A DNA stretch of 64,000 nucleotides, from positions 1 through 64,000 of the forward strand of contig NIVC01001443.1 in the NCBI GenBank assembly GCA_002269645.1, given 5' to 3'. The notes beneath the pieces are model-generated. The model saw only the letters and a program-made list of their open reading frames with translations. It did not search any database and was not told where the DNA came from. Position 1 is the first letter of the stretch. Each line of letters opens with the position of its first letter. A program made the translations under genes and the position numbers. This document shows positions 2,127 to 56,436 of this stretch, one piece after another. The stretch is from Macrostomum lignano (lineage: Eukaryota).

Positions 2127-2140
2127 GTCGCCATAGCAAC
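2127..2140. promoter_or_regulatory. RFX X-box-like palindrome
   Basis: GTCGCCATAGCAAC matches GTNRCC-AT-RGNAAC. Confidence 0.4.
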
Positions 2141-17715: not shown

Positions 17716-17892
17716 CACTAAGCTAATGCTCTCACCACATCGAAAAGCCATGGCAAGAGCAGCTGAAGCTTGTAGAGAAAAGGGCTACACACAGATAAAA
17801 TAAAACATAAATATACGCTGCTAATTACTCTACTGCCAGTAGTCAGTAGACAATTTACTCTTATTACAGGTTTTGCGTTCAATCGCGGGAAT

Positions 17893-20321
17893 TTATCTGG
17901 CCCGGTTCTCCAGGAAGCAGCGCAGCAGCAGGTCGGCCGCGTTGCCGGGAGACTTCAGGCCTTGGCGCAACTCGTCAAGCAGCGCCGGCAGGGTGGCTGC
18001 GACAGCCGGACTCTCCCTAAACAGGTCCATCAGGTGCTCGCGCACGTGAAGCCACATCCACTTCTCCAGCTGGGCCACCCGGTGCTGCACCAGCTCGCCA
18101 GAGTCGGTCACCCGCTCCAAAAACTCCATCACAGTCTGCCAAACCTCCGGCACGCCCTCGCCAGTCAGGGCGGAGCAGCGGAGGACGCGGGGCCGCCAGC
18201 CAGACAGCGGGTGCTTCATGCGCTGGTAGGTGCGCAGGGCCCTGCTGAGCTCCGTGGCCGCGTGGTTGGCCGCGGGGATGAGGTTGCCGTCGCACTTGGT
18301 CACCACCACCAGGTCCGCCACCTCCATGACGCCGCGCTTCACTCCTTGCAGCTCGTCGCCACCGCCAGGCGATTGCAGCAGCAGGAACATGTCTACCATG
18401 TCATTAACCTGGCGAGTGGGCGCGGGCGGCGCACTTTGTAAGGATTGGCGACTCATCTGTCCGTCTCCTCTACCCCTCCATCCGTGTCCCCTGCCCCTCT
18501 ATCCGTCTCCCCTACCCCTCCATCCGTGTCCCCTGCCCCTCTATCCGTCTCCCCTACCCCTCCATCCGTGTCCCCTGCCCCTCTATCCGTCTCCCCTACC
18601 CCTCCATCCATCTCCTCTACCCCTCCATCCGTGTCCCCTACCCCTTTATCCGTCTCCCCTACCCCTCTATCCGTCTCCCCTACCCCTTTATCCATCTCCC
18701 CTACCCCTCTATCCATCTCCCCTACCCCTCTATCCGTCTCCCCTACCCCTTTATCCGTCTCCCCTACCCCTCTATCCGTCTCCCCTACCCCTTTATCCGT
18801 CTCCCCTACCCCTCTATCCATCTCCCCTACCCCTCTATCCGTCTCCCCTACCCCTCCATCCGTCTCCCCTACCCCTCCATCCGTCTCCCCTACCCCTCCA
18901 TCCGTCTCCCCTACCCCTCTATCCGTCTCCCCTACCCCTATAGACGTCTTCCCTACCCCTGTATCCGTCTCCTATACCCATCCGTCTGTTCCCCACCTGT
19001 TCATCACCTGTACACCCATTCTCAGCTCTCAGCCTCGTGAGCCTCACCTGGTACTCAGCCTGGCCCACGCCCATAGTCTCAATCAGCAGGCAGTCAAATC
19101 CCGCCGCCTCGCACAGCACAGCCGCATTCTGGGTGTAGCGGGCCACGCCGCCGAGACTGCCGCCGCTGGGAGTTGAGCGAACAAACGCGCTGGGGTGCAC
19201 GCACAGCTCCGGCATGCGGGTAGCGTCGCCTAGCAACGAGCCGCCTGTGGCGCCTGAACTCGGGTCCACCTGAAATTTAGGGCAAACAATATTTTGAAAG
19301 CACTGGTTTAAAAAAGAGATTGGAGCAATTTGAGTCAGAAAAGTAGAGAGAAGAATAGACAGAGAGATGGGTAGACAGTAAGGGAGACTGGGTAGACAGT
19401 AAGGGAGACTGGGTAGACAGTAAGGGAGACTGGGTAGACAGTAAGGGAGACTGGGTAGACAGTAAGGGAGACTGGGTAGACAGTAAGGGAGACTGGGTAG
19501 ACAGTAAGGGAGACTGGGTAGACAGTAAGGGAGACTGGGTAGACAGTAAGGGAGACTGGGTAGACAGTAAGGGAGACTGGGTAGACAGTAAGGGAGACTG
19601 GGTAGACAGTAAGGGAGACTGGGTAGACAGTAAGGGAGACTGGGTAGACAGTAAGGGAGACTGGGTAGACAGTAAGGGAGACTGGGTAGACAGTAAGGGA
19701 GACTGAGTAGACAGTAAGGGAGACTGGGTAGACAGTAAGGGAGACTGGGTAGACAGTAAGGGAGACTGAGTAGACAGTAAGGGAGACTGGGTAGACAGTA
19801 AGGGAGACTGGGTAGACAGTAGGGTGACTGGGTAGATAGTAAGGGATATTGGGTAGACAGTAGGGAGACTGGGTAGACAGTAAGGGTAGACTCACCGTGA
19901 GCACGGCGATTCGCTTGCCTTGCCGCTTTACGAGGTCCTGGCCAATGCACTCGATAAAGGTGGACTTGCCCGCGCCCGGGGTCCCGGTGATGCCAACACG
20001 GAAGCAGCGCTTGTGCTGCCGCTGGGCCAGGTGTTTCAGCAGCCGGTTCACCAGCGCCTGGCCCCGCGCCTGCTTCTCCGGATGGCGCGACTCCACCAGA
20101 GTGATGGCCTGCGCCAGGCCGGTTCGCTGCTGGTTCAGCACCGCCTGGTACAGCCGGGCCACCGTGGGATCGTCCTGTGGCACCGACACGTCGAGGTAGG
20201 TGGTGGTGGCGCCCGCCAGGCCGCGGCAGCGGAGGCCGCTTGCTGGGGCCGGCGCGACCGCCAGCTGGCAGAGACGGTGAAGCGAACGACGCAACTGCGG
20301 GGGCGTCCGGGCATGAAGCAT
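17893..20321 (-). CDS. MMAA: Methylmalonic aciduria type A protein homolog (MeaB/ArgK-family GTPase chaperone of methylmalonyl-CoA mutase), 3 exons, ~387 aa
   Basis: Exons 20321-19896, 19269-19048 and 18408-17893 join in frame at phase-0 GT-AG introns. Motifs: [11 protein letters not shown]-loop [33 protein letters not shown], switch-III-like [25 protein letters not shown]. Arg-rich N-terminus resembles a mitochondrial presequence. Confidence 0.95.
18458..18990. repeat. 21-bp minisatellite in MMAA intron 2
   Basis: (TCCGTCTCCCCTACCCCTCTA)n, G-rich on the transcribed strand. Confidence 0.95.
19368..19890. repeat. 21-bp minisatellite in MMAA intron 1
   Basis: (GGGTAGACAGTAAGGGAGACT)n, about 24 copies, beginning at the donor site. 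Confidence 0.97.
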
Positions 20322-20419
20322 TCGAACTCTGGCAGTGCCTGCCTGCCTCCTTATCCACCTGTCTATCAAATGTCATTGTCGCGCCTACCTGTCTATCTGT
20401 CCACATGTCTCTCTATATC

Positions 20420-20810
20420 TACCAGTGTATCCTATCTACCAATGTATCCTATCTACCAGTGTATCCTATCTACCAGTCTATACCAATCTATCCTATGTAT
20501 CAGTCTATCCTATCCACCAGTCTATACCATCTAGGGTAGACAGTAAGGAAGACTGGTCTACCAGCCTATCTACCAGTCCATTCTATCTACCAGTCCATTC
20601 TATCTACCAGTCTATCCTATCTACCAGTCTATCCTATCTACCAGTCTATCCTATCTACCAGTCTATCCTATCTACCAGTCTATCCTATCCACCAGTCTAT
20701 CCTATCCACCAGTCTATACTATCTAGGGTAGACAGTAAGGAAGACTGGTCTACCAGCCTATCTACCAGTCCATTCTATCTACCAGTCTATCCTATCTACC
20801 AGTCCAGCTA
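20420..20810. repeat. ~20-bp minisatellite upstream of MMAA
   Basis: (TCTACCAGTCTATCCTA)n-type array containing two copies of the MMAA intron-1 unit. Confidence 0.9.
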
Positions 20811-21534: not shown

Positions 21535-24500
21535 TTATTCATTTAGAAACCGCTCCAGCTCCTCTTCCTCTTTGGACAGAACTGCTTTCGGCTGCTGCTG
21601 CTGCTGTTGCTGCTCAGAAGCAATTGCTCGCTTGCCCGACTTTGTCTTGACCGACTTTTCTGGTTTGACTTTCGATTTTGACTTTGACTTCGGCCTGACC
21701 GGAGGCTCGGGCTGTTCCGGCTCCACCGGCTGCTGCTGCTGTTGCTGCTTTGTCTTCTTCTTTCGCTTCTTCTTGGTCTGCTGCTTTTGCTCCTCAGCTG
21801 ACGGCTCGGGCAGAACCTGAGACTCTGCCGGCTCGTCTTCGTACCTGGTAGTGTGAGCCAATGTTGAACTTATCAAGACAAGAGAGTCTTCTGTCAATAG
21901 ACGATCAGCACACAGACCGTAATAGGCCTTGGGGAGCGATGACCTACAAAGTGACCCTTCTGGAGAGAGATGATGCACACTGTGACCATTCTGGGACAGC
22001 AATGACCCACACTATGACCATTCTGAGAACAGCGATGACCCTTACAGTGACCATTTTGGGGACAGCAATGACCCATGCAATGACCATTCTGAGGACAGCG
22101 ATGACCCACACTATGACCATTCTGAGAACAGCGATGACCCTTACAGTGACCATTCTGGGACAGCAATGACCCACACTATGACCATTCTGAGAACAGCGAT
22201 GACCCTTACAGTGACCATTTTGGGGACAGCAATGACCCATGCAATGACTATTCTGAGGACAGCGATGACCCACACTATGACCATTCTGAGAACAGCGATG
22301 ACCCTTACAGTGACCATACTGGGGACAGCAATGACCCATACAATGACCATTCTGAGGACAGCGATGACCCACACTTTGACCATTCTGAGAACAGCGATGA
22401 CCCTTACAGTGACCATACTGGGGACAGAAATAACCCACACAATGACCATTCTGAGAACGGCGATGACCAACGACCCATACAATGACCCTTTTTGTGACAG
22501 CAATGACACAAAATTATCATTTTTAAACTCAAAATGAACCTTTTTAGGGAGAGGTGATGACTCATAGTCCCCCTAGTGGGTGGGCAGAGATGACCCAAAG
22601 CGATCATACAATATGACCCTCCTGAGGACAACAATGTCCCACACAAAGTTAACTAACTAGAGCACAAACAGAAGGCGATGATGACACAAAAATGGCTCAA
22701 TATTGACCACAACACGCAAAAGCTTTCTGTCAGCAATTGTTCCTATCTAAATATATCGTTTCCAAACTTACTTGGCCAAGAGAGGTCCCCAGTCAATCAC
22801 CGGAGCAGGGGCAGGCGGCACTGCGACCGTCTCTACCTGCTCAGCATCCTCAGCTTCATCACCATCGCCATCAACAGCATCGGCATCAGCAGCAAAAGCA
22901 GCCACTGCAGAATCATCCAGTTCAGCAACATCGTCAAAGCGGGTCGACACGACAGCTCCGGGTAAAGCGTCATCGCTGTCGACATCGTCGGCGACATCGA
23001 CATCCGCATTCGCGACGCCGTCGATCGCATCGACGCCGACCTCGGCAGCGTCAGCAGCAGTCGGGCTGCGCTGACTGGAGGACTGGCTGCTCCTTTCATC
23101 ATCCGCTCCAGCCGGCTCGGGTCGGCTCGGCGACAGCGGCGGCGGCGTCGGCGAAGACGGCAGCTTTGGCTGATGATGAGGCGGAGGCTGAGGCTGCTGA
23201 GATTGCGGCGAAGGCGGCTGCGGAGGCTGGGGTAGCTGAGCGCGACGCAGCTCCATCAGGTACTGCTCGGCGCCGGGAATCAGACGGGCGGGCGGCGCGG
23301 ATAATCGACCGACAACAGCGGGAGGTGACTGTGACGGCAGCGGACTGAGCGGAGACGGGGTCTTAGGCGCGGCGTCGGTGACCGAAGTCTGTTGTTGGCT
23401 GGGTCAAGTTGGAGATAGAGTAGAGTAGAGGATATTTAATTTAATATTGCCCTCCTGCACTTTATAGCATCGCTAATTTTATTGGAAGCCGTCTGATTTC
23501 GCTCAATGATTTATGAAGCAGATCGATACCGACTACTGTACACGCGAAAACACGCCTACACTCAACTATATAATAGAAATGCAGCACCTTCTTCTCTCAG
23601 GTCAGGATGGCCGAGCGGTCTAAGGCGCTGCGTTCAGGTCGCAGTCCTCTTCTGAGGGCGTGGGTTCGAATCCCACTTCTGACAAAAACTTTTTGCGATT
23701 TTATTTTTTTAATCAAAAATGAAAAAATTCTACAAACTAAGTATTTTAGATTTTGTTTTGATTTTCTCTTTAAAAATGTTGAACAACAGCTCATTAAAAA
23801 CTCATTATAAATTTAACAATAGAAAACTCATACCTAGCAAAATTTTGTAGGCGTGAAAAGTGTTTTCGATACATATCGGCCAAGGTTTTACAAGCCGCAA
23901 ATGCATGCCGTATGCCTTTTGAAATATTAAATATATAAAGTAGATGCTTCAGAAATTTTCAAACAACAATTTTAAATTAAACATGAATTAAAAAATGCAT
24001 TTGCATTTATATTGCAACTTTATATTGAAATTTTAAAACAAATACTCGGTACCCATAGGCCATAGCCCAGCTAGATACAAAAAAATCAATTCTTAATAAA
24101 ATTGGATGTTACTTACCTGGAATCGGAAATTCTCGATGCGTCTTCTTTCTTTTTTGAACGTGTGTGATCCATCCTGCAATTAAACAAAACAAATAGAACG
24201 GTTATTAACAGCGTGTTTTTCTTGTTATATCAGATAGCGATTATAATGTCCGTTACGTGCTACTAACAATAAATTAAACAAATACAGTTGTAAGCCTGTC
24301 GTTTTGGTTTAGCTTTCTAATAGCAAAATACACTTATTTAAACTAACCAAAACCCACCCCTGTTAAATCAATTCGCCTTCCAAACCTCCTCAGACTCCAT
24401 TCTAGACACTCCAATCCGCCCAGACTCCATCCTAGACATTCCAATCCCCAGACTCCATCCTAGACACTTCAATCCCCCAGACTCCATCCTAGACACTCCA

Positions 24501-26269
24501 ATCCCCCAGACTCCATCCTAGACACTCCAATCCCCCAGACTCCATCCTAGACACTCCAATCCGCTCCAGACTCCATCCTAGACACTCCAATCCGCTCCAG
24601 ACTCCATCCTAGACACTCCAATCCCCCAGACTCCATCCTAGACACTCCAATCCCCCAGACTCCATCCTAGACACTCCAATCCCCCAGACTCCATCCTAGA
24701 CACTCCAATCCCCCAGACTCCATCCTAGACACTCCAATCCCCAGACTCCATCCTAGACACTCCAATCCCCAGACTCCATCCTAGACACTCCAATCCCCCA
24801 GACTCCATTCTAGACACTCCAATCCGCCCAGACTCCATCCTAGACATTCCAATCCCCAGACTCCATCCTAGACACTTCAATCCCCCCAGACTCCATCCTA
24901 GACACTCCAATCCCCCAGACTCCATCCTAGACACTCCAATCCCCCAGACTCCATCCTAGACACTCCAATCCGCTCCAGACTCCATCCTAGACACTCCAAT
25001 CCCCCAGACTCCATCCTAGACACTCCAATCCCCCAGACTCCATCCTAGACACTCCAATCCGCTCCAGACTCCATCCTAGACACTCCAATCCCCCAGACTC
25101 CATCCTAGACACTCCAATCCCCCAGATTCCATCCTAGACACTCCAATCCCCCAGACTCCATCCTAGACACTCCAATCCGCTCCAGACTCCATCCTAGACA
25201 CTCCAATCCCCCAGACTCCACCGTCCAACCCAGCAAAGATATGCCAGAAAACGCACCCATCATTGGCCTGGCGACTCTCCTCCTCTTCGAGCTGCAGCTC
25301 CAGCACAGCGGTAGTCCTGTCCTCGGTGTTGGCTTCTAGCCGCTGCAATAGTCGCTGTCGCTGAGCGCAGAGGTAGGGCAGGCAGAGGAACCGGTGCACA
25401 TACTTCAGCCCGTAGCCATTTCGCATGGAGGACTCGGCGTAGCGGGTGATCTCGAGCCGCCGGCCGCTCTCCCGGATGGCCATGCGGGCCTGGTCGGCGG
25501 TGACGCTCCGGTGGTGCCCCATGTCTCGGTGATTGGCCAGAACCAGCACCGGCAGGTCCGGCGGCGCCCTGGCCAGCTCCCGCTCTACGTAGGCCATCGT
25601 CCAGGCCTTCGTCATGTCCAGCATCAGCACCACGCCGTGGCAGCCAGCGTAGGCTGCGGCCGCTGCCGCTTCGTCGCTGCCGGCTGAGCCGCCGCTGACA
25701 GCAGCTGTGGGGATTCAAGGATATGGACTGAACATCCCGGCATAACAGACAGCTCTTAACAGGACAAGATATGATCCTAACCTGCTCGAAAGCGAATCCC
25801 AGATCCATCCCGCACTCTTAAATGTTAGACAGTCTCTCTCACCCGAAGCAGCACCTCCCGGACTTCGATTGTCGCAGTCGTTGGCCAGTTTCAGACCCGC
25901 CCGAGCCCGCCTGGGCCGCCCGGAGTCCACGGCGTCCCACACCTGCAGCGTGGCAGATCTGGAGTCGCATTTCCAGCGAATGATAGCGGAGCGCGGGCGC
26001 TCAGTTGGCGCGTACTCCTCAATGAAGGCGCCACCCTGCAGGCGCGCCAGCAGGCAGGACTTGCCAACGCTACTGTCGCCGCGGATGACAATCTTTAGCG
26101 TGTCTGCCGGCTCCACCGCCTGGCTTCTAACAGGCCGGCGCTGCGCCAGCTGCTTTGGCTTGCCCTGCTGCTGCGGCTGCTGAGATGGCAGCAGCGATGG
26201 CGACCCCGCAGCAGTTTCTGCCTCACCAGGGCGTGTCGAGGGCTTCAGAATGCGGCTGATGAAAGACAT
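21535..26269 (-). CDS. RABL6: Rab-like protein 6 homolog, 5 exons, ~622 aa
   Basis: Exons 26269-25843, 25704-25257, 24173-24117, 23398-22772 and 21844-21535 (1869 nt, phases consistent). Motifs: LKIVIRGDSSVGKS, EEYAPT, LQVWDAVD, CHGVVLMLDMTK, ANHRDMGHHR, RYAESSMRNGYGLKYVHRF. Pro/Ser/acidic low-complexity middle, Lys-rich tail ending EEEELERFLNE. Exons 3-4 are less certain. Confidence 0.88.
21955..22510. repeat. 33-bp minisatellite in RABL6 intron 4
   Basis: ATGACCCACACTATGACCATTCTGAGAACAGCG and variants. Confidence 0.93.
23601..23684 (+). tRNA. tRNA-Leu (anticodon CAG), long variable arm
   Basis: GTCAGGATGGCCGAGCGGTCTAAGGCGCTGCGTTCAGGTCGCAG...GGGTTCGAATCCCACTTCTGACA. Intact acceptor, D, anticodon and T stems, A and B boxes, and a TTTTT Pol III terminator at 23690-23694. 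Confidence 0.96.
24392..25221. repeat. 28-31-bp minisatellite in RABL6 intron 2
   Basis: (ACTCCATCCTAGACACTCCAATCCCCCAG)n, about 28 copies. Confidence 0.95.
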
Positions 26270-30560: not shown

Positions 30561-33500
30561 CTAATCCAGCTCCTTCTCCATCTTGATCAGCTCGGCGATG
30601 CCGTGGTTCATCTTGCTGACAGCATCGAACTCGGTGAGACCCATGCGCTCCTTGTTGGAGATGTCGTAGAGTCCGCCGACAGCCTCGGAGTGCTCACCGG
30701 CTGAGCCGCGCACCTGCAGCTGGAACCGGTCGGCCACGCGCTGCAGAGCTTCCTGGCCTCCAGCGGCCAGCTTGGGCAGCTTGATGTGCACCGAGGCGCG
30801 GATCGTGGTGCCCAGGTTCGTCGGGCAGAAGGTCAGGAAGCCGAGACGCTCGTAGTGGCTAAACGCCATCCGCTTCTCGATCTCGTTCACCGCGTTCACC
30901 AGCCGGCCGTAGACCTCCCGGATGCAGCCTCCCTTCTGCATCGAGATTATACGCATGTGGTCCTCCTCGCCGACCCACACTAGGAACGTCTTGCTGTCGT
31001 TGTGGTAGATGCCGCGACCCGTCGGCCAGTAGCGGCACGCGTTCGCCTTCTGCAGGAACCGGTCGCCCTCCTTGAACAAAAAGTGGTCGTCAATCAGCTG
31101 CTGCTGCACCTCCTTGGTCATCCCGGTCAGTGGGTAATACGTGCCCTTCAGCTCGCCCGACATGTCCTTCAGCGTGCCCGACACGAGCTCCTCCAGCTGC
31201 TTGTAGTGCTCCTCCGTCATGTTCGGGTTGAACGGGAACTGCTTCACCGACCTGCCGCACCGGATTCGGGTCGACACGACGTACTTTCCCTCCGGGTCCA
31301 CGTCACCGAACTGGTTCGGGTCGCCCAGCGTGCACGGCGGGTGCCTGTCAGTCCGCTTGAAGCCTCCATGGTACTCCTCGATGATCGGGTCGAACAGGTC
31401 GGCGAACACCGTGTACGCCTCGGCGTCGGGAGCGTAGACACCCACTCCGGAGTCGGGGTTCTCCACGCCTGAAAACAGTAATTTGCTTCACTTAATCCAA
31501 TGCTGTTACACCCTTTTGCAGCACCACAAAATACGTACTACAGCGCCGTAAAACCACATGTGTCCCCTTCTGCTCAATTGCACCCTAACCAAAAACTCAT
31601 ACCCAACTAGCTCAGAAGAGACTGCTCAAAAGATTATACTTAAAGGGTTCAGAAACCGTAAAAATATGCTTCATCTGCATGCTCTTCATCAAGAATAACC
31701 TATCAGTAACAAGTAAATACATCAGGCTTATCAACAACTCCAGTACCAACCCTTATTTGTAAGTAAATCAATTTGTACTAAATGATACACCAGTGTGAAT
31801 CGAAACAGATACACCAGTCTGAATCAAAACTGATACACCAGTCTGAATCAAAACTGATACACCAGTCTGAATCAAAACTGATACACCAGTCTGAATCAAA
31901 ACCGATACACCAGTGTGAATCAAAACCGATACACCAGAGTGAATCGAAACAGATACACCAGTCTGAATCAAAACTGACACACTAAACGGCACAATGACAA
32001 CCAGGTACTTAAGGACCTTTAATTAGTTCAGTGAAATTCCCCTTTAAGGTACAAAGAATGCATGCACAGTTGAATGAGAACCGTGGTCACTAATGTATTA
32101 CTGCGTTAATTTTGTCAGCAAAAACAATATCCGTGCATTGTTGAAAATTGTAAGCAAATGCCGGTATGAATACTTCAGTTTTAGCAATGCGTACAATTCA
32201 ATAAACACGTGAAAGAACCAAGAAATCAGAGTCTCCTCACCAGACTGGATCACGTCCTTCAGAGTTGATCCGAATGACGGAGTGCTCATGTTCTTGAGCT
32301 TGTCGACCACCTCCTTGGTGAGGTGCTTCTTCAGCAGTGAGTGGCAAGTGGCGTCGCCCTGCAGCTTCTGGTAGCCGGCTTCGATGTAGCTGACGACCTC
32401 GGTGTCGACGCCTTGCTCGAGCGCCTTCTCCATGCGGATGAGCTCGGCGATGCCGTGGTTCATCTTGCTGACAGCATCGAACTCGGTGAGACCCATGCGC
32501 TCCTTGTTGGAGATGTCGTAGAGTCCGCCGACAGCCTCGGAGTGCTCACCGGCTGAGCCGCGCACCTGCAGCTGGAACCGGTCGGCCACGCGCTGCAGAG
32601 CTTCCTGGCCTCCAGCGGCCAGCTTGGGCAGCTTGATGTGCACCGAGGCGCGGATCGTGGTGCCCAGGTTCGTCGGGCAGAAGGTCAGGAAGCCGAGACG
32701 CTCGTCGTGGCTAAACGCCATCCGCTTCTCGATCTCGTTCACCGCGTTCACCAGCCGGCCGTAGACCTCCCGGATGCAGCCTCCCTTCTGCATCGAGATT
32801 ATACGCATGTGGTCCTCCTCGCCGACCCACACTAGGAACGTCTTGCTGTCGTTGTGGTAGATGCCGCGACCCGTCGGCCAGTAGCGGCACGCGTTCGCCT
32901 TCTGCAGGAACCGGTCGCCCTCCTTGAACAAAAAGTGGTCGTCAATCAGCTGCTGCTGCACCTCCTTGGTCATCCCGGTCAGTGGGTAATACGTGCCCTT
33001 CAGCTCGCCCGACATGTCCTTCAGCGTGCCCGACACGAGCTCCTCCAGCTGCTTGTAGTGCTCCTCCGTCATGTTCGGGTTGAACGGGAACTGCTTCACC
33101 GACCTGCCGCACCGGATTCGGGTCGACACGACGTACTTTCCCTCCGGGTCCACGTCACCGAACTGGTTCGGGTCGCCCAGCGTGCACGGCGGGTGCCTGT
33201 CAGTCCGCTTGAAGCCTCCATGGTACTCCTCGATGATCGGGTCGAACAGGTCGGCGAACACCGTGTACGCCTCGGCGTCGGGAGCGTAGACACCCACTCC
33301 GGAGTCGGGGTTCTCCACGCCTGAAAACAGTAATTTGCTTCACTTAATCCAATGCTGTTACACCCTTTTGCAGCACCACAAAATACGTACTACAGCGCCG
33401 TAAAACCACATGTGTCCCCTTCTGCTCAATTGCACCCTAACCAAAAACTCATACCCAACTAGCTCAGAAGAGACTGCTCAAAAGATTATACTTAAAGGGT

Positions 33501-36500
33501 TCAGAAACCGTAAAAATATGCTTCATCTGCATGCTCTTCATCAAGAATAACCTATCAGTAACAAGTAAATACATCAGGCTTATCAACAACTCCAGTACCA
33601 ACCCTTATTTGTAAGTAAATCAATTTGTACTAAATGATACACCAGTGTGAATCGAAACAGATACACCAGTCTGAATCAAAACTGATACACCAGTCTGAAT
33701 CAAAACTGATACACCAGTCTGAATCAAAACTGATACACCAGTCTGAATCAAAACCGATACACCAGTGTGAATCAAAACCGATACACCAGAGTGAATCGAA
33801 ACAGATACACCAGTCTGAATCAAAACTGACACACTAAACGGCACAATGACAACCAGGTACTTAAGGACCTTTAATTAGTTCAGTGAAATTCCCCTTTAAG
33901 GTACAAAGAATGCATGCACAGTTGAATGAGAACCGTGGTCACTAATGTATTACTGCGTTAATTTTGTCAGCAAAAACAATATCCGTGCATTGTTGAAAAT
34001 TGTAAGCAAATGCCGGTATGAATACTTCAGTTTTAGCAATGCGTACAATTCAATAAACACGTGAAAGAACCAAGAAATCAGAGTCTCCTCACCAGACTGG
34101 ATCACGTCCTTCAGAGTTGATCCGAATGACGGAGTGCTCATGTTCTTGAGCTTGTCGACCACCTCCTTGGTGAGGTGCTTCTTCAGCAGTGAGTGGCAAG
34201 TGGCGTCGCCCTGCAGCTTCTGGTAGCCGGCTTCGATGTAGCTGACGACCTCGGTGTCGACGCCTTGCTCGAGCGCCTTCTCCATGCGGATGAGCTCGGC
34301 GATGCCGTGGTTCATCTTGCTGACAGCATCGAACTCGGTGAGACCCATGCGCTCCTTGTTGGAGATGTCGTAGAGTCCGCCGACAGCCTCGGAGTGCTCA
34401 CCGGCTGAGCCGCGCACCTGCAGCTGGAACCGGTCGGCCACGCGCTGCAGAGCTTCCTGGCCTCCAGCGGCCAGCTTGGGCAGCTTGATGTGCACCGAGG
34501 CGCGGATCGTGGTGCCCAGGTTCGTCGGGCAGAAGGTCAGGAAGCCGAGACGCTCGTCGTGGCTAAACGCCATCCGCTTCTCGATCTCGTTCACCGCGTT
34601 CACCAGCCGGCCGTAGACCTCCCGGATGCAGCCTCCCTTCTGCATCGAGATTATACGCATGTGGTCCTCCTCGCCGACCCACACTAGGAACGTCTTGCTG
34701 TCGTTGTGGTAGATGCCGCGACCCGTCGGCCAGTAGCGGCACGCGTTCGCCTTCTGCAGGAACCGGTCGCCCTCCTTGAACAAAAAGTGGTCGTCAATCA
34801 GCTGCTGCTGCACCTCCTTGGTCATCCCGGTCAGTGGGTAATACGTGCCCTTCAGCTCGCCCGACATGTCCTTCAGCGTGCCCGACACGAGCTCCTCCAG
34901 CTGCTTGTAGTGCTCCTCCGTCATGTTCGGGTTGAACGGGAACTGCTTCACCGACCTGCCGCACCGGATTCGGGTCGACACGACGTACTTTCCCTCCGGG
35001 TCCACGTCACCGAACTGGTTCGGGTCGCCCAGCGTGCACGGCGGGTGCCTGTCAGTCCGCTTGAAGCCTCCATGGTACTCCTCGATGATCGGGTCGAACA
35101 GGTCGGCGAACACCGTGTACGCCTCGGCGTCGGGAGCGTAGACACCCACTCCGGAGTCGGGGTTCTCCACGCCTGAAAACAGTAATTTGCTTCACTTAAT
35201 CCAATGCTGTTACACCCTTTTGCAGCACCACAAAATACGTACTACAGCGCCGTAAAACCACATGTGTCCCCTTCTGCTCAATTGCACCCTAACCAAAAAC
35301 TCATACCCAACTAGCTCAGAAGAGACTGCTCAAAAGATTATACTTAAAGGGTTCAGAAACCGTAAAAATATGCTTCATCTGCATGCTCTTCATCAAGAAT
35401 AACCTATCAGTAACAAGTAAATACATCAGGCTTATCAACAACTCCAGTACCAACCCTTATTTGTAAGTAAATCAATTTGTACTAAATGATACACCAGTGT
35501 GAATCGAAACAGATACACCAGTCTGAATCAAAACTGATACACCAGTCTGAATCAAAACTGATACACCAGTCTGAATCAAAACTGATACACCAGTCTGAAT
35601 CAAAACCGATACACCAGTGTGAATCAAAACCGATACACCAGAGTGAATCGAAACAGATACACCAGTCTGAATCAAAACTGACACACTAAACGGCACAATG
35701 ACAACCAGGTACTTAAGGACCTTTAATTAGTTCAGTGAAATTCCCCTTTAAGGTACAAAGAATGCATGCACAGTTGAATGAGAACCGTGGTCACTAATGT
35801 ATTACTGCGTTAATTTTGTCAGCAAAAACAATATCCGTGCATTGTTGAAAATTGTAAGCAAATGCCGGTATGAATACTTCAGTTTTAGCAATGCGTACAA
35901 TTCAATAAACACGTGAAAGAACCAAGAAATCAGAGTCTCCTCACCAGACTGGATCACGTCCTTCAGAGTTGATCCGAATGACGGAGTGCTCATGTTCTTG
36001 AGCTTGTCGACCACCTCCTTGGTGAGGTGCTTCTTCAGCAGTGAGTGGCAAGTGGCGTCGCCCTGCAGCTTCTGGTAGCCGGCTTCGATGTAGCTGACGA
36101 CCTCGGTGTCGACGCCTTGCTCGAGCGCCTTCTCCATGCGGATGAGCTCGGCGATGCCGTGGTTCATCTTGCTGACAGCATCGAACTCGGTGAGACCCAT
36201 GCGCTCCTTGTTGGAGATGTCGTAGAGTCCGCCGACAGCCTCGGAGTGCTCACCGGCTGAGCCGCGCACCTGCAGCTGGAACCGGTCGGCCACGCGCTGC
36301 AGAGCTTCCTGGCCTCCAGCGGCCAGCTTGGGCAGCTTGATGTGCACCGAGGCGCGGATCGTGGTGCCCAGGTTCGTCGGGCAGAAGGTCAGGAAGCCGA
36401 GACGCTCGTCGTGGCTAAACGCCATCCGCTTCTCGATCTCGTTCACCGCGTTCACCAGCCGGCCGTAGACCTCCCGGATGCAGCCTCCCTTCTGCATCGA

Positions 36501-39500: not shown

Positions 39501-42500
39501 TGTATTACTGCGTTAATTTTGTCAGCAAAAACAATATCCGTGCATTGTTGAAAATTGTAAGCAAATGCCGGTATGAATACTTCAGTTTTAGCAATGCGTA
39601 CAATTCAATAAACACGTGAAAGAACCAAGAAATCAGAGTCTCCTCACCAGACTGGATCACGTCCTTCAGAGTTGATCCGAATGACGGAGTGCTCATGTTC
39701 TTGAGCTTGTCGACCACCTCCTTGGTGAGGTGCTTCTTCAGCAGTGAGTGGCAAGTGGCGTCGCCCTGCAGCTTCTGGTAGCCGGCTTCGATGTAGCTGA
39801 CGACCTCGGTGTCGACGCCTTGCTCGAGCGCCTTCTCCATGCGGATGAGCTCGGCGATGCCGTGGTTCATCTTGCTGACAGCATCGAACTCGGTGAGACC
39901 CATGCGCTCCTTGTTGGAGATGTCGTAGAGTCCGCCGACAGCCTCGGAGTGCTCACCGGCTGAGCCGCGCACCTGCAGCTGGAACCGGTCGGCCACGCGC
40001 TGCAGAGCTTCCTGGCCTCCAGCGGCCAGCTTGGGCAGCTTGATGTGCACCGAGGCGCGGATCGTGGTGCCCAGGTTCGTCGGGCAGAAGGTCAGGAAGC
40101 CGAGACGCTCGTCGTGGCTAAACGCCATCCGCTTCTCGATCTCGTTCACCGCGTTCACCAGCCGGCCGTAGACCTCCCGGATGCAGCCTCCCTTCTGCAT
40201 CGAGATTATACGCATGTGGTCCTCCTCGCCGACCCACACTAGGAACGTCTTGCTGTCGTTGTGGTAGATGCCGCGACCCGTCGGCCAGTAGCGGCACGCG
40301 TTCGCCTTCTGCAGGAACCGGTCGCCCTCCTTGAACAAAAAGTGGTCGTCAATCAGCTGCTGCTGCACCTCCTTGGTCATCCCGGTCAGTGGGTAATACG
40401 TGCCCTTCAGCTCGCCCGACATGTCCTTCAGCGTGCCCGACACGAGCTCCTCCAGCTGCTTGTAGTGCTCCTCCGTCATGTTCGGGTTGAACGGGAACTG
40501 CTTCACCGACCTGCCGCACCGGATTCGGGTCGACACGACGTACTTTCCCTCCGGGTCCACGTCACCGAACTGGTTCGGGTCGCCCAGCGTGCACGGCGGG
40601 TGCCTGTCAGTCCGCTTGAAGCCTCCATGGTACTCCTCGATGATCGGGTCGAACAGGTCGGCGAACACCGTGTACGCCTCGGCGTCGGGAGCGTAGACAC
40701 CCACTCCGGAGTCGGGGTTCTCCACGCCTGAAAACAGTAATTTGCTTCACTTAATCCAATGCTGTTACACCCTTTTGCAGCACCACAAAATACGTACTAC
40801 AGCGCCGTAAAACCACATGTGTCCCCTTCTGCTCAATTGCACCCTAACCAAAAACTCATACCCAACTAGCTCAGAAGAGACTGCTCAAAAGATTATACTT
40901 AAAGGGTTCAGAAACCGTAAAAATATGCTTCATCTGCATGCTCTTCATCAAGAATAACCTATCAGTAACAAGTAAATACATCAGGCTTATCAACAACTCC
41001 AGTACCAACCCTTATTTGTAAGTAAATCAATTTGTACTAAATGATACACCAGTGTGAATCGAAACAGATACACCAGTCTGAATCAAAACTGATACACCAG
41101 TCTGAATCAAAACTGATACACCAGTCTGAATCAAAACTGATACACCAGTCTGAATCAAAACCGATACACCAGTGTGAATCAAAACCGATACACCAGAGTG
41201 AATCGAAACAGATACACCAGTCTGAATCAAAACTGACACACTAAACGGCACAATGACAACCAGGTACTTAAGGACCTTTAATTAGTTCAGTGAAATTCCC
41301 CTTTAAGGTACAAAGAATGCATGCACAGTTGAATGAGAACCGTGGTCACTAATGTATTACTGCGTTAATTTTGTCAGCAAAAACAATATCCGTGCATTGT
41401 TGAAAATTGTAAGCAAATGCCGGTATGAATACTTCAGTTTTAGCAATGCGTACAATTCAATAAACACGTGAAAGAACCAAGAAATCAGAGTCTCCTCACC
41501 AGACTGGATCACGTCCTTCAGAGTTGATCCGAATGACGGAGTGCTCATGTTCTTGAGCTTGTCGACCACCTCCTTGGTGAGGTGCTTCTTCAGCAGTGAG
41601 TGGCAAGTGGCGTCGCCCTGCAGCTTCTGGTAGCCGGCTTCGATGTAGCTGACGACCTCGGTGTCGACGCCTTGCTCGAGCGCCTTCTCCATGCGGATGA
41701 GCTCGGCGATGCCGTGGTTCATCTTGCTGACAGCATCGAACTCGGTGAGACCCATGCGCTCCTTGTTGGAGATGTCGTAGAGTCCGCCGACAGCCTCGGA
41801 GTGCTCACCGGCTGAGCCGCGCACCTGCAGCTGGAACCGGTCGGCCACGCGCTGCAGAGCTTCCTGGCCTCCAGCGGCCAGCTTGGGCAGCTTGATGTGC
41901 ACCGAGGCGCGGATCGTGGTGCCCAGGTTCGTCGGGCAGAAGGTCAGGAAGCCGAGACGCTCGTCGTGGCTAAACGCCATCCGCTTCTCGATCTCGTTCA
42001 CCGCGTTCACCAGCCGGCCGTAGACCTCCCGGATGCAGCCTCCCTTCTGCATCGAGATTATACGCATGTGGTCCTCCTCGCCGACCCACACTAGGAACGT
42101 CTTGCTGTCGTTGTGGTAGATGCCGCGACCCGTCGGCCAGTAGCGGCACGCGTTCGCCTTCTGCAGGAACCGGTCGCCCTCCTTGAACAAAAAGTGGTCG
42201 TCAATCAGCTGCTGCTGCACCTCCTTGGTCATCCCGGTCAGTGGGTAATACGTGCCCTTCAGCTCGCCCGACATGTCCTTCAGCGTGCCCGACACGAGCT
42301 CCTCCAGCTGCTTGTAGTGCTCCTCCGTCATGTTCGGGTTGAACGGGAACTGCTTCACCGACCTGCCGCACCGGATTCGGGTCGACACGACGTACTTTCC
42401 CTCCGGGTCCACGTCACCGAACTGGTTCGGGTCGCCCAGCGTGCACGGCGGGTGCCTGTCAGTCCGCTTGAAGCCTCCATGGTACTCCTCGATGATCGGG

Positions 42501-43375
42501 TCGAACAGGTCGGCGAACACCGTGTACGCCTCGGCGTCGGGAGCGTAGACACCCACTCCGGAGTCGGGGTTCTCCACGCCTGTCATAGTGTTTTGGGGTT
42601 TGTTTTGAATGCACACAACACTTCGTGATTGAGATTTAGTCTCTTGTGATTCCTATTACCTGACTGAATGACATCTTTTAGGGTGGATCCAAAAGTGGCC
42701 GTCTTCAGGCCCTTTAGTTTTTGCAGCACCTCGGCAGTAAGATGTTTTTTTAGCAGGGACTTGCAGTTGGGATCGGATTGCAGCTTTTGGAATCCATCCT
42801 CGAGATAGGCAATGACGGCTGGGTCCACCTCGTTGCTCGCGCCGCTATGGGGGAGAATTTGTTTAATTTTTGCTTAGATATAGTTCGTTTAGTATAAAAA
42901 TAAATTAATTAAACTGCATTACCTGTTATGATTCATGATTCATGAAGGAATATTTTAGTTTATTTTGTGTGTAGTAGTATAAGTAGTAGTTCATGCATGC
43001 ACTCAGATTTTTTGTTGTTTTGATTGTTTTGAAATTGGATTTTACGTTATTTATGGGAGCGGAACAGCCAGGATAGACAGATTAAAAAGCTTTCTAAAAC
43101 AAAATGTCGAAGCAAGGTCAAAAGAATTGGTGTCTCTCATGCAGCTTCATTTGAAACTGGTTTAACGGAAATAATAGCATTCACACATTCATAGGAGAGG
43201 ATTATGCAGTTAGTAGTTCCCCGTGACTTGACATGCAAGAGTTTTGAAAGCAACTGCAGCATGTCAGCACAATCTCCTTACTATCATTAGGGACTACTTA
43301 CCCACTAACCGGTTGAGCATCTGCCGGTCTCGCCTGACCTCTTTGACCTCCTCGGCCTTTAAATAAGTTCCCCAT
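30561..43375 (-). CDS. Multi-domain arginine-kinase-type phosphagen (ATP:guanido) kinase with 7 concatenated domains, ~2530-2550 aa if the 1-bp deletion at ~37873 is an error
   Basis: First exon 43375-43302 (or 42936-42923), exon 42844-42660, then catalytic exons 42579-41500, 40727-39648, 38875-37797, 37024-35945, 35172-34093, 33320-32241 (1080 nt each, one 1079) and last exon 31468-30561. All catalytic introns are phase 1 (QSG|VENPDSG). Motifs: [58 protein letters not shown]. Confidence 0.9.
30589..42582 (-). repeat. Near-perfect tandem array of a 1852-bp unit (1080-bp exon + 772-bp intron), ~6.5 copies
   Basis: ORF starts recur at 31466, 33318, 35170, 37022, 38873, 40725 (spacing 1852, once 1851). 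Exon and intron sequences look identical by eye except a 1-bp deletion (~37873) and a C>A at ~30854. Confidence 0.97.
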
Positions 43376-47213: not shown

Positions 47214-48618
<1,405 letters not shown>

Positions 48619-49247
48619 TAGGTTGTTACAATTTGTTTTAATTTACTTAGTTCATTATTCGATAAGTTTTTAAACACCTCAAAACCCAACCAGAAATCGC
48701 GCGAGAGATCCAGTAGTCAATCATCTTAGATCTTGTCGGCGTCGGCGACGAATAGGCCTAGGTTTAATTCGATTCGACGATTCGATACATGATCTGCGAG
48801 TCTTCAACCTCTCCTTTCTTGGTAGTGGTATTGTCGTATTGAGAGAATATAGTAATTAGTAAGCACAGCTTTTCGTCTCTTGCGAGCTTGACTGTTGGTG
48901 TTTTGCATGATCAGTCTCACTCACCCACCCGGCCACCCCATGCCATCTCCTTCGGCCTCATTCATCTATGCTGTATGGTCGTGGTGTAGTGTAATCAGTG
49001 TAGACGTGCCGTGTAGTTTATAGTGTAGCTACATTTGTGTGTGTAATACTCACGTCATACAAAGAAAATGACATGATGTGGCTGGTGCATAAAATACTAG
49101 GCTTACATCTTACATGATAAAAACTAAGAAGGCAACACTTGACATACCTTCATACCTTGCAATACAAATTTTATACATGACATGGCAGCATAGTACTGGG
49201 CTAGCTATCTTAATTTTATAAAACCTATTTGCTATGCATCAATGATC

Positions 49248-51126: not shown

Positions 51127-54100
51127 ATGCGCGGTCCACTATCGCTGCCACTACCCAGGCGACTGCGCCAACTGGTGCTGGCCAATTTTGCCTGTCCTGG
51201 CAATCGCACTGGCCACCTCGCTCGCCTGGCATTTCGCCTCGCCTCCCATGAGCAGCAGCACGCCTCCCGCCTGTGCGCCGAGGCTTGCATTGATTTGTTG
51301 CCAGCAGCAACACCCGCCTCGCCGGCGACCTGCCTGGAGGTTGGCTTTGGCGCCGGGCACGCGCTGGCCGAGCTGCGACGACTTCGGCCAGTTGGCGAGC
51401 TTCGCCTTCTGGGCGTCGACGCGAGCAGCTTGGCTTTGAAGCTGGCAACGGCGCAGCTTGGCGGCGAGCCCGACAATGCAAAGCTGTTCCACTGCCAGGC
51501 CGACGACCTGCTGCCTGTGGCCACCGGCAGCTGCAACCTGGTTGCTCAGGTAGCTTAGCCTAGGTTGGCTTCGGCTGCCGATTCTTCAGTGTCTGCTCCC
51601 CCGGGTCTTCAGGTGTTGCTACCCCTTTATAGATTTTTTCAGGCGCTGCTATCTTTAGTTCCTCAGGTGCTATTTGCTATTGCCCCCCGTTCTTCAGGTG
51701 CTTTTGCCCCCCGGTTCTTTATGTGCTTTTGCCCACCGGTTCTTTATGTGCATTTGCCCCCCGGTTCTTTATGTGCTTTTGCCCCCCGGTTCTTTATGTG
51801 CTTTTGCCCCCCGGTTCTTTATGTGCATTTGCCCCCCGGTTCTTTATGTGCATTTGCCCCCGGTTCTTTATGTGCATTTGCCCCCCGGTTCTTTATGTGC
51901 TTTTGCCCCCCCCCCCCGGTTCTTTATGTGCTTTTGCCCACCGGTTCTTTATGTGCATTTGCCCCCGGTTCTTTATGTGCTTTTGCCCCCCGGTTCTTTA
52001 TGTGCTTTTGCCCCCGGTTCTTTATGTGCTTTTGCCCCCCGGTTCTTTATGTGCATTTGCCCCCCCCCGGTTCTTTATGTGCTTTTGCCCCCCGGTTCTT
52101 TATGTGCATTTGCCCACCGGTTCTTTATGTGCATTTGCCCACCGGTTCTTTATGTGCATTTGCCCCCCGGTTCTTTATGTGCATTTGCCCCCCGGTTCTT
52201 TATGTGCATTTGCCCCCCCCCGGTTCTTTATGTGCATTTGCCCCCGGTTCTTTATGTGCATTTGCCCCCCCCGGTTCTTTATGTGCTTTTGCCCCCCGGT
52301 TCTTTATGTGCTTTTGCCCCCCCCCGGTTCTTTATGTGCATTTGCCCCCCGGTTCTTTATGTGCATTTGCCCACCGGTTCTTTATGTGCATTTGCCCCCC
52401 GGTTCTTTATGTGCATTTGCCCCCCGGTTCTTTATGTGCTTTTGCCTCCAGTTCTTTATGTGCATTTGCCCCCCCCCGGTTCTTTATGTGCTTTTGCCCC
52501 CCCCCCGGTTCTTTATGTGCTTTTGCCCCCCCGGTTCTTTATGTGCTTTTGCCCACCGGTTCTTTATGTGCTTTTGCCCCCCGGTTCTTTATGTGCTTTT
52601 GCCCCCTCCGGTTCTTTATGTGCATTTGCCCCCGGTTCTTTATGTGCATTTGCCCCCGGTTCTTTATGTGCATTTGCCCCCCGGTTCTTTATGTGCTTTT
52701 GCCCCCGGTTCTTTATGTGCATTTGCCCCCCGGTTCTTTATGTGCATTTGCCCCCGGTTCTTTATGTGCATTTGCCCCCCCCCCGGTTCTTTATGTGCTT
52801 TTGCCCACCGGTTCTTTATGTGCATTTGCCCCCCCCCGGTTCTTTATGTGCATTTGCCCCCCCGGTTCTTTATGTGCTTTTGCCCCCCCCGGTTCTTTAT
52901 GTGCTTTTGCCCCCCCCCGGTTCTTTATGTGCTTTTGCCCCCCCCCCGGTTCTTTATGTGCTTTTGCCCACCGGTTCTTTATGTGCTTTTGCCCCCGGTT
53001 CTTTATGTGCTTTTGCCCCCCCCCGGTTCTTTATGTGCATTTGCCCCCGGTTCTTTATGTGCATTTGCCCCCCGGTTCTTTATGTGCATTTGCCCCCCGG
53101 TTCTTTATGTGCATTTGCCCCCCCCTGGTTCTTTATGTGCTTTTGCCCCCCCCGGTTCTTTATGTGCATTTGCCCCCGGTTCTTTATGTGCATTTGCCCC
53201 CGGTTCTTTATGTGCATTTGCCCCCCGGTTCTTTATGTGCTTTTGCCCCCGGTTCTTTATGTGCATTTGCCCCCGGTTCTTTATGTGCTTTTGCCCCCCG
53301 GTTCTTTATGTGCATTTGCCCCCCCCGGTTCTTTATGTGCTTTTGCCCCCCCCGGTTCTTTATGTGCATTTGCCCCCCGGTTCTTTATGTGCTTTTGCCC
53401 CCCGGTTCTTTATGTGCATTTGCCCCCCGGTTCTTTATGTGCTTTTGCCCCCCGGTTCTTTATGTGCATTTGCCCCCCGGTTCTTTATGTGCTTTTGCCC
53501 CCCGGTTCTTTATGTGCTTTTGCCCCCCGGTTCTTTATGTGCTTTTGCCCCCCCCGGTTCTTTATGTGCATTTGCCCCCCGGTTCTTTATGTGCTTTTGC
53601 CCCCCCCCGGTTCTTTATGTGCATTTGCCCCCCCCCCCCGGTTCTTTATGTGCTTTTGCCCCCCCCCGGTTCTTTATGTGCATTTGCCCCCCGGTTCTTT
53701 ATGTGCTTTTGCCCCCCCCCCGGTTCTTTATGTGCATTTGCCCCCCGGTTCTTTATGTGCTTTTGCCCCCCGGTTCTTTATGTGCTTTTGCCCCCCCCCC
53801 GGTTCTTTATGTGCATTTGCCCCCGGTTCTTTATGTGCATTTGCCCCCCGGTTCTTTATGTGCTTTTGCCCCCCGGTTCTTTATGTGCTTTTGCCCCCCC
53901 CCCCGGTTCTTTATGTGCATTTGCCCCCGGTTCTTTATGTGCTTTTGCCCCCCCGGTTCTTTATGTGCTTTTGCCCCCCCCGGTTCTTTATGTGCATTTG
54001 CCCCCCGGTTCTTTATGTGCTTTTGCCCCCCCCGGTTCTTTATGTGCATTTGCCCCCGGTTCTTTATGTGCTTTTGCCCCCCCCCCGGTTCTTTATGTGC

Positions 54101-56436
54101 TTTTGCCCCCCGGTTCTTTATGTGCTTTTGCCCCCGGTTCTTTATGTGCATTTGCCCCCCGGTTCTTTATGTGCTTTTGCCCCCGGTTCTTTATGTGCTT
54201 TTGCCCCCCCCCGGTTCTTTATGTGCATTTGCCCCCCGGTTCTTTATGTGCTTTTGCCCCCCCCCCGGTTCTTTATGTGCATTTGCCCCCGGTTCTTTAT
54301 GTGCTTTTGCCCCCGGTTCTTTATGTGCTTTTGCCCCCCCGGTTCTTTATGTGCTTTTGCCCCCCGGTTCTTTATGTGCATTTGCCCCCCGGTTCTTTAT
54401 GTGCTTTTGCCCCCCGGTTCTTTATGTGCTTTTGCCCCCCCCCCCCGGTTCTTTATGTGCTTTTGCCCCCCCCCCGGTTCTTTATGTGCTTTTGCCCCCC
54501 CCCCGGTTCTTTATGTGCATTTGCCCCCCGGTTCTTTATGTGCTTTTGCCCCCCCCCCGGTTCTTTATGTGCATTTGCCCCCGGTTCTTTATGTGCTTTT
54601 GCCCCCGGTTCTTTATGTGCTTTTGCCCCCCCCGGTTCTTTATGTGCATTTGCCCCCGGTTCTTTATGTGCTTTTGCCCCCGGTTCTTTATGTGCTTTTG
54701 CCCCCCCCCCGGTTCTTTATGTGCTTTTGCCCCCGGTTCTTTATGTGCTTTTGCCCCCCGGTTCTTTATGTGCATTTGCCCCCCGGTTCTTTATGTGCTT
54801 TTGCCCCCCCCGGTTCTTTATGTGCTTTTGCCCCCCCCCGGTTCTTTATGTGCATTTGCCCCCCGGTTCTTTATGTGCTTTTGCCCCCCCCCGGTTCTTT
54901 ATGTGCATTTGCCCCCGGTTCTTTATGTGCTTTTGCCCCCGGTTCTTTATGTGCTTTTGCCCCCCCCGGTTCTTTATGTGCATTTGCCCCCGGTTCTTTA
55001 TGTGCTTTTGCCCCCCCCCGGTTCTTTATGTGCATTTGCCCCCGGTTCTTTATGTGCTTTTGCCCCCCGGTTCTTTATGTGCTTTTGCCCCCCCGGTTCT
55101 TTATGTGCTTTTGCCCCCCGGTTCTTTATGTGCATTTGCCCCCCGGTTCTTTATGTGCTTTTGCCCCCCGGTTCTTTATGTGCTTTTGCCCCCCCCCGGT
55201 TCTTTATGTGCTTTTGCCCCCCCCCCGGTTCTTTATGTGCATTTGCCCCCGGTTCTTTATGTGCTTTTGCCCCCCCGGTTCTTTATGTGCTTTTGCCCCC
55301 CCCGGTTCTTTATGTGCTTTTGCCCCCCGGTTCTTTATGTGCTTTTGCCCCCCCGGTTCTTCATGTGCATTTGCCCCCGATTCTTTATGTGCATTTGCCC
55401 CCCGGTTCTTTATGTGCTTTTGCCCCCCGGTTCTTTATGTGCATTTGCCCCCCGGTTCTTTATGTGCATTTGCCCCCCGGTTCTTTATGTGCATTTGCCC
55501 CCCGGTTCTTTATGTGCATTTGCCCCCCGGTTCTTTATGTGCTTTTGCCCCCGGTTCTTTATGTGCATTTGCCCCCCGGTTCTTTATGTGCATTTGCCCC
55601 CCGGTTCTTTATGTGCTTTTGCCCCCCGGTTCTTTATGTGCTTTTGCCCCCCCCGGTTCTTTATGTGCTTTTGCCCCCCCCCGGTTCTTTATGTGCTTTT
55701 GCCCCCCCCGGTTCTTTATGTGCTTTTGCCCCCCAGTTGTTCAGGTGCTACTGCCCTCAGTTGCTAAGGTGCTACTGACCCCAGTTGCTAAGGTGCTACT
55801 GACCCCAGTTGTTCAGGTGCTACTGCCCTCAGTTGCTAAGGTGCTACTGACCCCAGTTGCTAAGGTGCTACTGACCCCAGTTGCTAAGGTGCTACTGACC
55901 CCAGTTGTTTCAGGTGCTACTGCCCTCAGTTGCTAAGGTGCTACTGACCCCAGTTGCTAAGGTGCTGCTGACCCCAGTTGCTAAGGTGCTACTGACCCCA
56001 GTTGTTCAGGTGCTACTGCCCTCAGTTGCTAAGGTGCCACTGCCCCCAGTTGCTAAGGTGCTGCTGCCCCCAGTTGCTAAGGTGGTGCTGCCCCCCGTCC
56101 ATCAGGGCTTGCTAAACCTAACCCTGCAAGCTATGGTTCCCCAACGCCCCACCGGCCCCGCCCCAATTCCAGGTGAACTGCTTCGGCGTGCTGCCCCGCG
56201 CTCAGTTGGCCGGGGCCTGCAGAGAAGCCTACCGGGTGCTCCGTCCGGACGGCCGGCTGGTGGCGGTGGCCGACTGCTGGCTGACCAGCCGGTTGGTCGC
56301 GGAGCTCGGCCGGCCGGATCTGCTGGACAGCCTGGCTGCCCTGGAGGCGGCCGGCTTCTCCAAGTTGAAGCACAGTCGGCGCCAGTGCTGCCTGACTGGC
56401 CGGCCGCTGCACCTGGTCACGGCTGAGGTCCGCTGA
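51127..56436 (+). CDS. Class I SAM-dependent methyltransferase (Methyltransf_11/25-like), 2 exons, 228 aa
   Basis: Exon 1 51127-51549 (CAG|GTAG), exon 2 56173-56436 (TTCCAG|GTG), phase 0. Motif I CLEVGFGAG, acidic GVDAS, then LP...CNLVAQVNC and EAYRVLRPDGRL. Confidence 0.85.
51700..56095. repeat. Minisatellite filling the methyltransferase intron
   Basis: (GGTTCTTTATGTGC[A/T]TTTG-Cn) about 140 copies to ~55733, then a 24-bp unit CCCCAGTTGCTAAGGTGCTACTGA to ~56095. Confidence 0.97.

Follow-up and report, generated by a model that had tools for sequence, protein, structure and literature searches.

Junction-like minisatellite units in introns of a 64-kb Macrostomum lignano window, with one candidate intron arisen by tandem duplication

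A 64,000-nucleotide (nt) stretch of DNA from the flatworm Macrostomum lignano (contig NIVC01001443.1, positions 1 to 64,000; hereafter the window) was analyzed for similarity between the minisatellite arrays of its introns and the exon-exon junctions of the same introns. This similarity is real for one intron, that of a class I methyltransferase (MT) gene, plausible for a second in an arginine kinase (AK) gene, borderline for intron 1 of an MMAA gene, and absent in three further array-bearing introns. As the most likely account we infer that short segments at exon-intron boundaries, or spanning them, were locally duplicated in tandem in a genome prone to minisatellites, and that the MT intron may have been born by this route; we give this explanation about an even chance of being right.

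Five predicted gene models, each with GT-AG introns and an open frame, were built for MMAA, RABL6, AK, MT, and ELOVL. They contain 19 introns, the six AK introns being copies of one another, and arrays were found in six independent introns: MMAA introns 1 and 2, RABL6 introns b and d, the AK intron, and the MT intron. An initial annotation of the window had located satellite-bearing introns at the same six places, and the array peptides it quoted do occur in the array translations. It had distributed them over four genes, and these are MT, MMAA, AK, and RABL6; the carrier of the 33-nt satellite, however, is not a separate gene but the acidic, lysine-rich C-terminus of RABL6.

Each array was locally aligned at the nucleotide level to its own exon-exon junction. 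Controls came from all sites of the spliced coding sequence of the window (6.9 kb), from pseudo-junctions in an AG|G or G|GT context, and from the real junctions of other introns, 13 in number. In this comparison of own with other junctions, which the initial annotation had proposed and which was made here at the scale of the window, the MT 24-mer and the AK array both ranked first on their own junctions with p = 0.003-0.009 and p = 0.008-0.04, respectively. The MT 25-mer reached p = 0.04-0.11 and the MMAA intron 1 array p = 0.08-0.9, while the RABL6 29-mer (p = 0.10-0.28) as well as the MMAA intron 2 array and the RABL6 33-mer (p = 0.5-0.9) stayed at chance level. Ungapped identity and gapped local alignment gave agreeing outcomes across arrays, and the junction of the MT intron was the best match of its array in all coding sequence. 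When profile hidden Markov models (HMMs) of the units were run against the same coding sequence, the sole MT match (E = 0.056) and the sole AK match (E = 0.38) both fell on their own junctions, and no profile of the remaining arrays matched its own junction. At the peptide level, MMAA intron 1 showed 5/6 identity (LTVYPS vs LTVDPS, p = 0.004-0.02) and the own-junction match of MT was not significant. Thus, among three in-frame matches initially reported, that of MT stands at the nucleotide level, that of AK is moderate, and that of MMAA intron 1 is borderline and confined to peptides; two weaker peptide matches, for MMAA intron 2 and the RABL6 33-mer, are chance (p > 0.5). Pooled over the 13 real junctions, the rank-sum test gave p = 0.008-0.07 depending on the scoring, and the Fisher combination of the p-values from the AG|G controls was ~0.004.

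The MT intron is array-derived from end to end. It consists of degenerate units (51550-51688), a 25-nt array (51671-55756), a 24-nt array (55731-56095), and a degenerate tail (56096-56172). Laid out on a TTCAGGTG-like motif, the units follow a register of ~25 nt in which the first unit begins with the last 9 nt of exon 1; this first unit reads GTTGCTCAG|GTAGCTTAGCC, as compared with GTTCTTCAGGTGCTTTTGCC in the array. From 5' to 3' the copies become ever more regular, continue as ~160 25-mers and ~15 24-mers, and pass into the degenerate tail, which ends in CCCCAATTCCAG|GTGAACTGC. An nhmmer profile of the 24-mer matched the 5' degenerate region at 51609-51672 with E = 0.0011. With GTTGCTCAG, its final 9 nt, exon 1 aligns to the beginning of the repeat unit (24-mer GTTGTTCAGGTGCTACTGC against GTTGCTCAG|GTG-AACTGC), and the start of exon 2 (GTGAACTGC) resembles the 24-nt unit. 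A second patch in exon 2 (+16..+36), TGCTGCCCC[GCGCT]CAGTTG, also matches the 24-nt unit with p = 0.007. The junction CAG|GTG is a full proto-splice site (AG|GT), and the spliced model gives one contiguous Methyltransf_25/11 match at residues 70-171 that spans the junction. Because the intron is all array, the unit resembles both exon ends, and the second exon 2 patch matches as well, a Rogers-type origin, that is, intron gain by tandem duplication around AGGT, is a reasonable reading of the MT sequence, as the initial annotation had suggested.

How much of this could arise by chance and selective reading was weighed against the same results. With many arrays, three frames, rotations, and flexible peptide matching at hand, a reader would always find a few junction-like units, and none of the similarities would then reflect common descent. 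Such an account agrees with the chance level of three of the six introns, with the significance of MMAA intron 1 on peptides alone and of AK under some scoring schemes only, and with the frequency of 10-13-nt matches between unrelated introns and coding sequence. The enrichment of unit lengths that are multiples of 3, to which the initial annotation had pointed, is also marginal and unstable. It had omitted the 25-nt MT array (4 kb); the intronic periods are 21, 21, 29, 33, 24, 25, and 24, so that five of seven are multiples of 3 (binomial p ~0.045). Between the two genomic copies described below, the periods vary (29 vs 30, 33 vs 31, and 25 vs 26-28). Of the non-genic arrays, 5/16 are multiples of 3, which is the chance rate; arrays at positions 1-17600 of the window, where no genes occur among the open reading frames listed and NCBI calls none across ~7900-17900, were treated as non-genic. 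The related argument from third-position mismatches was rejected, as it follows from the selection of matches at the peptide level and from a third-position G+C of ~0.88 in the AK exon. Against chance speak the MT signals, which are independent yet concordant (junction, p = 0.003-0.009; exon 2 patch, p = 0.007; degenerate units running into exon 1), the sole profile-HMM matches of the MT and AK units on their own junctions, and the pooled p = 0.004-0.07. Chance is considered a fairly unlikely explanation of the whole pattern.

The initial annotation had also suggested that a cDNA-templated process may seed introns with junction copies. In the rival reading weighed here, copies of the spliced junction made from a cDNA or RNA template would have been inserted into the intron and then amplified. 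Scores for the spliced junction, the exon-intron boundary, and the intron-exon boundary were 24, 20, and 20 for the MT 24-mer and 20, 22, and 12 for AK, respectively. The slightly higher value of the spliced MT junction is what such seeding would leave behind, but in AK the genomic exon-intron boundary scores higher than the spliced junction, and overall the genomic boundaries match the units about as well. Most of the matching sequence falls on GTG and the 9-14 nt before it, at the end of the upstream exon; a cDNA or RNA template is not needed, because the unspliced exon-donor boundary carries that matched sequence. Matching exon sequence nowhere exceeds ~20 nt, and tandem duplication in an intron-less ancestor would account for the MT pattern without RNA. 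Templated seeding is accordingly rated as extremely improbable.

In the AK gene, domains 2-7 each carry a 772-nt intron at VIQSG|V that is in phase 1 and interrupts the Gly codon of VIQSG|VEN. Between its 24-nt array and the splice sites are 258 nt on the donor side and 314 nt on the acceptor side. Of 15 positions compared, the unit TGATTCAGACTGGTG shares 13 with the exon/donor boundary TGATCCAGTCTG|GTG. The junction itself, CTG|GCG, is not a proto-splice-site match. Satellite-free introns occupy the same position, in the same phase, in AK domain 1 (80 nt), in a single-domain M. lignano paralogue (78 nt), and in an AK gene of a barnacle. By this comparison of gene structures the AK intron is ancient, and the satellite arose later inside it. 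Therefore the birth model fails for AK, and the Rogers-type origin offered in the initial annotation, reasonable for MT, is refuted here by the introns shared with barnacle, paralogue, and domain 1.

The AK product comprises seven contiguous kinase domains after an N-terminal MGNLFKG, a myristoylation-like start. Among the six 1852-bp repeats, five agree at every position (100% identity), and the sixth is put out of frame by the deletion of one base. The annotation of the second genomic copy shows a kinase gene of no more than 388 amino acids (aa). The near-identity of the repeats suggests either very recent amplification or an artefact of long-read assembly or polishing.

Splice-site-like motifs are present in the units of the MT 24-nt array and of the AK array. 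The MT 24-nt units carry CAG|GTG or AAG|GTG (YYCAG|GTG), which in appearance places an acceptor beside a donor, and the AK units contain CTG|GTGTAT. Arrays of this kind might act as decoy or recursive splice sites, selected to regulate the splicing of long introns. However, the ~160 MT 25-mers carry TAT|GTG and have lost the AG. The MT intron measures 4.6 kb in the window and ~0.85 kb in the second genomic copy (locus L001, 10001-11541; gene span 1541 nt), with the same arrays in both and a copy number that differs ~five-fold, and in the gene models AK domain 1 and the paralogue have the same junction without any array. Selected splice-site mimicry thus appears highly improbable.

In MMAA, the array of intron 1 begins 3 nt inside the donor site, and each of the two introns is ~80-85% satellite. 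The junction of intron 1 (ACG|GTG) is a partial proto-splice match and that of intron 2 (CAG|GTT) a full one. Mollusc and bird MMAA have five intron positions in common, all of which are missing in M. lignano, while both M. lignano introns are at positions that are absent in mollusc and bird and lie inside single exons there. One of them lies ~30 nt before, and the other 21 nt after, a mollusc/bird position. Relative to mollusc and bird, the MMAA introns are by their positions judged lineage-specific, which points to intron loss plus gain, or to large shifts, in the M. lignano lineage; a Rogers-type origin is conceivable for them. The comparison of intron positions, another check put forward at the outset, was hence divided, as the MMAA positions proved absent in mollusc and bird and the AK intron proved to be shared with barnacle. 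Two older MMAA models, P0004 and P0033, are frameshifted and were set aside as uninformative.

The surroundings of MMAA exon 1 bear on a further alternative, in which template switching or unequal exchange, guided by microhomology, would have brought units of pre-existing local satellite families into introns at sites that had a few bases in common with the unit beforehand, so that junction similarity would mark the landing site and not the origin. Exon 1 is flanked on both sides (20416-20806 and 19364-19892) by one satellite family with the core TCTACC(C)AGTCT. The 17-nt array upstream of the exon runs in the opposite orientation and has two embedded 21-nt units of the intron type (20534-20556 and 20725-20747). 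Satellites of the window have the cores TCTACC, CTACCC, and CCAGTCT in common, and the AK junction holds CCAGTCTGG, which is similar to the common core. On the other hand, the MT and AK units occurred nowhere else in the eight loci searched, six of them from M. lignano (~130 kb), and the MT similarity of ~20 nt plus a second exon patch goes beyond microhomology. We regard capture of this sort as distinctly unlikely.

Local duplication at exon-intron boundaries was also sought directly. In a longest-common-substring boundary test over all 14 introns, nominal significance (p < 0.05) was reached by two MT comparisons and, each with p = 0.03, by MMAA intron 2 (AGGCTGAG) and RABL6 intron d (CTCTCTTG); none of these matches is strong, and boundary duplication as a general feature was rejected. 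Intron ends compared with opposite exons gave nothing in the introns other than that of MT. A blastn-short search for extended exon homology within introns returned background 9-13-mers only, and because these are frequent, the 8-mer matches of Rogers type were down-weighted.

Under the duplication explanation, ordinary minisatellites of the repeat-rich M. lignano genome would expand within short introns. Junction-like units would originate where replication slippage or unequal exchange duplicates a short genomic segment located on an exon-intron boundary or reaching across it. Exon end and splice site would still be provided by the outermost copies, and those between them, being spliced out, could amplify freely. 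For MT, an exonic AG|GT segment may have been amplified into the whole 4.6-kb intron, giving a tandem-array intron of Rogers type; for AK, the satellite arose later inside an ancient intron. The arrays are unstable, with copy number and period differing between genomic copies; that of RABL6 intron d has 16 copies in the window (21935-22468) and 3 in the second copy (L006, 8296-8400).

Several results weigh against this explanation. The direct predictions of the Rogers model are borne out weakly in MT: the end of its intron compared with the end of exon 1 gave p = 0.03-0.2 and its start compared with the start of exon 2 ~0.08. One of the matching 8-mers, GCTTCGGC, does not occur in the second genomic copy. 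Protein searches found no MT homologue outside M. lignano, the single relative being P0001. The AK array is 258 nt off the donor, so simple boundary-spanning slippage does not directly explain it, and the AK match could be due to chance after seven arrays were tested. Members of the satellite family to which the unit of MMAA intron 1 belongs are also seen outside that intron. Exact 10-13-nt matches between unrelated pairs of intron and coding sequence are common background in blastn-short; the junction of RABL6 intron b, for instance, recurs as a 10-mer in intron a of the same gene. Moreover, the sample is very small, and robust support comes from one intron alone.

A stronger proposal is that M. 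lignano creates introns de novo at an appreciable rate through minisatellite amplification of exonic proto-splice-site segments, with MT and MMAA as examples of different ages. This is held to be unlikely. The initial suggestion that the genome routinely turns coding repeats into introns is unsupported, as three of the six introns show nothing. If de novo creation were nevertheless true, this transgenesis-capable flatworm with its very minisatellite-prone genome would allow intron birth to be studied as it happens. The origin of new introns is still debated and recent traceable cases in animals are scarce, and the 4.6-kb MT intron of junction-like units is a clear candidate for the tandem-duplication route. 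MMAA, with two introns at new positions and five mollusc/bird introns gone, suggests a lineage turnover of introns that is worth measuring. With a single robust case and a pooled signal that is weak, the 64 kb provide a lead but do not demonstrate a habit of the genome as a whole.

Zhuo et al. 2007, a study that De Grassi and Ciccarelli 2009 cite, reportedly described human introns that arose from tandem arrays. Intron gain by tandem duplication around AGGT is established, with 188 events catalogued by 2012 (PMC3443670), and the earlier statement that few natural cases are documented is outdated. In human genes of segmental duplications, minisatellite expansion at exon-intron boundaries yields new introns (PMC2812944, De Grassi and Ciccarelli 2009). 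As far as its sequence tells, the MT intron is of this known kind, tandem duplication or boundary minisatellite. It resembles Rogers-type introns in its CAG|GTG junction, in a unit that resembles the end of exon 1 and the start of exon 2, in a splicing model that restores an uninterrupted domain, and in holding little beyond repeats. It differs from them in having ~175 copies in two unit variants instead of one duplication, and in intron ends that are weakly homologous to the opposite exons. With the human tandem-array introns the window shares units of ~20-30 bp with splice-site-like motifs at an exon-intron boundary, where they lengthen or create an intron, and a copy number that varies between recent duplicates; the MT units start from the last 9 nt of exon 1, and the array of MMAA intron 1 lies next to its donor. 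Unlike the human cases, those of M. lignano belong to a different phylum, have far longer arrays (up to 4.4 kb), and are known here from DNA sequence.

The arrays of MMAA intron 2 and of RABL6 introns b and d, and probably that of AK, resemble the ordinary intronic minisatellites of M. lignano. The MT array differs from these by reaching both splice sites and matching exon sequence. Introner elements and transposon-derived introns are similar in that repeated sequence forms most of the intron. However, each intron in the window has its own unit, and no common element, terminal inverted repeats, or target-site duplication was seen. Because its units are private to their own intron among the eight loci searched, the MT intron is not of the introner or transposon type.

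Coordinates of the gene models and of their array-bearing and control introns in the window (positions are those of the 64,000-nt stretch).
Feature	Position	Strand	Description
MMAA/MeaB GTPase gene	17893..20321	-	exons 19896-20321, 19048-19269, 17893-18408
MMAA intron 1 (AVLT|VDPSS)	19270..19895	-	21-nt array 19364-19892
MMAA intron 2 (AEYQ|VNDM)	18409..19047	-	21-nt array 18456-18979
RABL6-like GTPase gene	21535..26269	-	5 exons; intron b 24174-25256 (29-nt array 24391-25220)
RABL6 intron d	21845-22771	-	33-nt array 21935-22468
AK gene, seven contiguous domains	30561..43375	-	domains 2-7 within six 1852-bp tandem repeats
AK representative intron	31469..32240	-	24-nt array 31783-31982; five further copies at 33635, 35487, 37339, 39190, 41042
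AK domain-1 intron	42580..42659	-	80 nt, VIQSG|V position, no satellite
MT exon 1	51127..51549	+	model matches P0001 (98% identity)
MT intron	51550..56172	+	4623 nt, 96% tandem array, GTAGCT...CCAG
MT exon 2	56173..56436	+	gene model
ELOVL elongase gene	59177..60700	+	5 exons, four satellite-free introns; supplied control junctions

The window is eukaryotic DNA with GT-AG introns and G+C-rich exons. Tandem arrays account for ~30% of it, and for 55% of intron and 30% of intergenic sequence; simple and tandem repeats make up 15% of the M. lignano genome (PMC5730564). Pfam backs the assignments of RABL6, AK, MT, and ELOVL, in the case of AK via precomputed domain hits. The NCBI M. lignano proteins P0001 (MT) and P0002 (MMAA) contain exactly the modelled junction peptides, P0002 with 100% identity to the model over both junctions. 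The second genomic copy is represented by loci L001 and L006 (NIVC01001373.1), which are collinear with the window, and L007 (NIVC01001443.1), whose arrays agree with those of the window in period, copy number, and score, is the window itself; protein identity between the copies is ~98% where measured (MT). RABL6 is annotated with 625 aa in L006 and 628 aa in L007. Two extra M. lignano loci, L004 and L005, are nearly satellite-free.

The sole Rfam/ARAGORN match in the window is a tRNA-Leu(CAG) at 23601-23684 (+), antisense inside RABL6 intron c; a tRNA-like stretch at ~58020-58230 was called by neither ARAGORN nor Rfam. A (TAG)n microsatellite of ~187 copies (47427-47987) also occurs in the second copy (L001, 7120-7588). 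It is flanked by imperfect inverted repeats of up to 50 nt at 70% complementarity, with shorter arms at 79-83%, and the region 47198-48632 looks like a foldback or miniature inverted-repeat transposable element (MITE)-like element. The segment GGCAAACTTTTTTACC...GGCCAGA...AACCTAG (window 57540-57600) is probably a dispersed repeat, because it recurs in the unrelated M. lignano locus L004 at 8157-8299.

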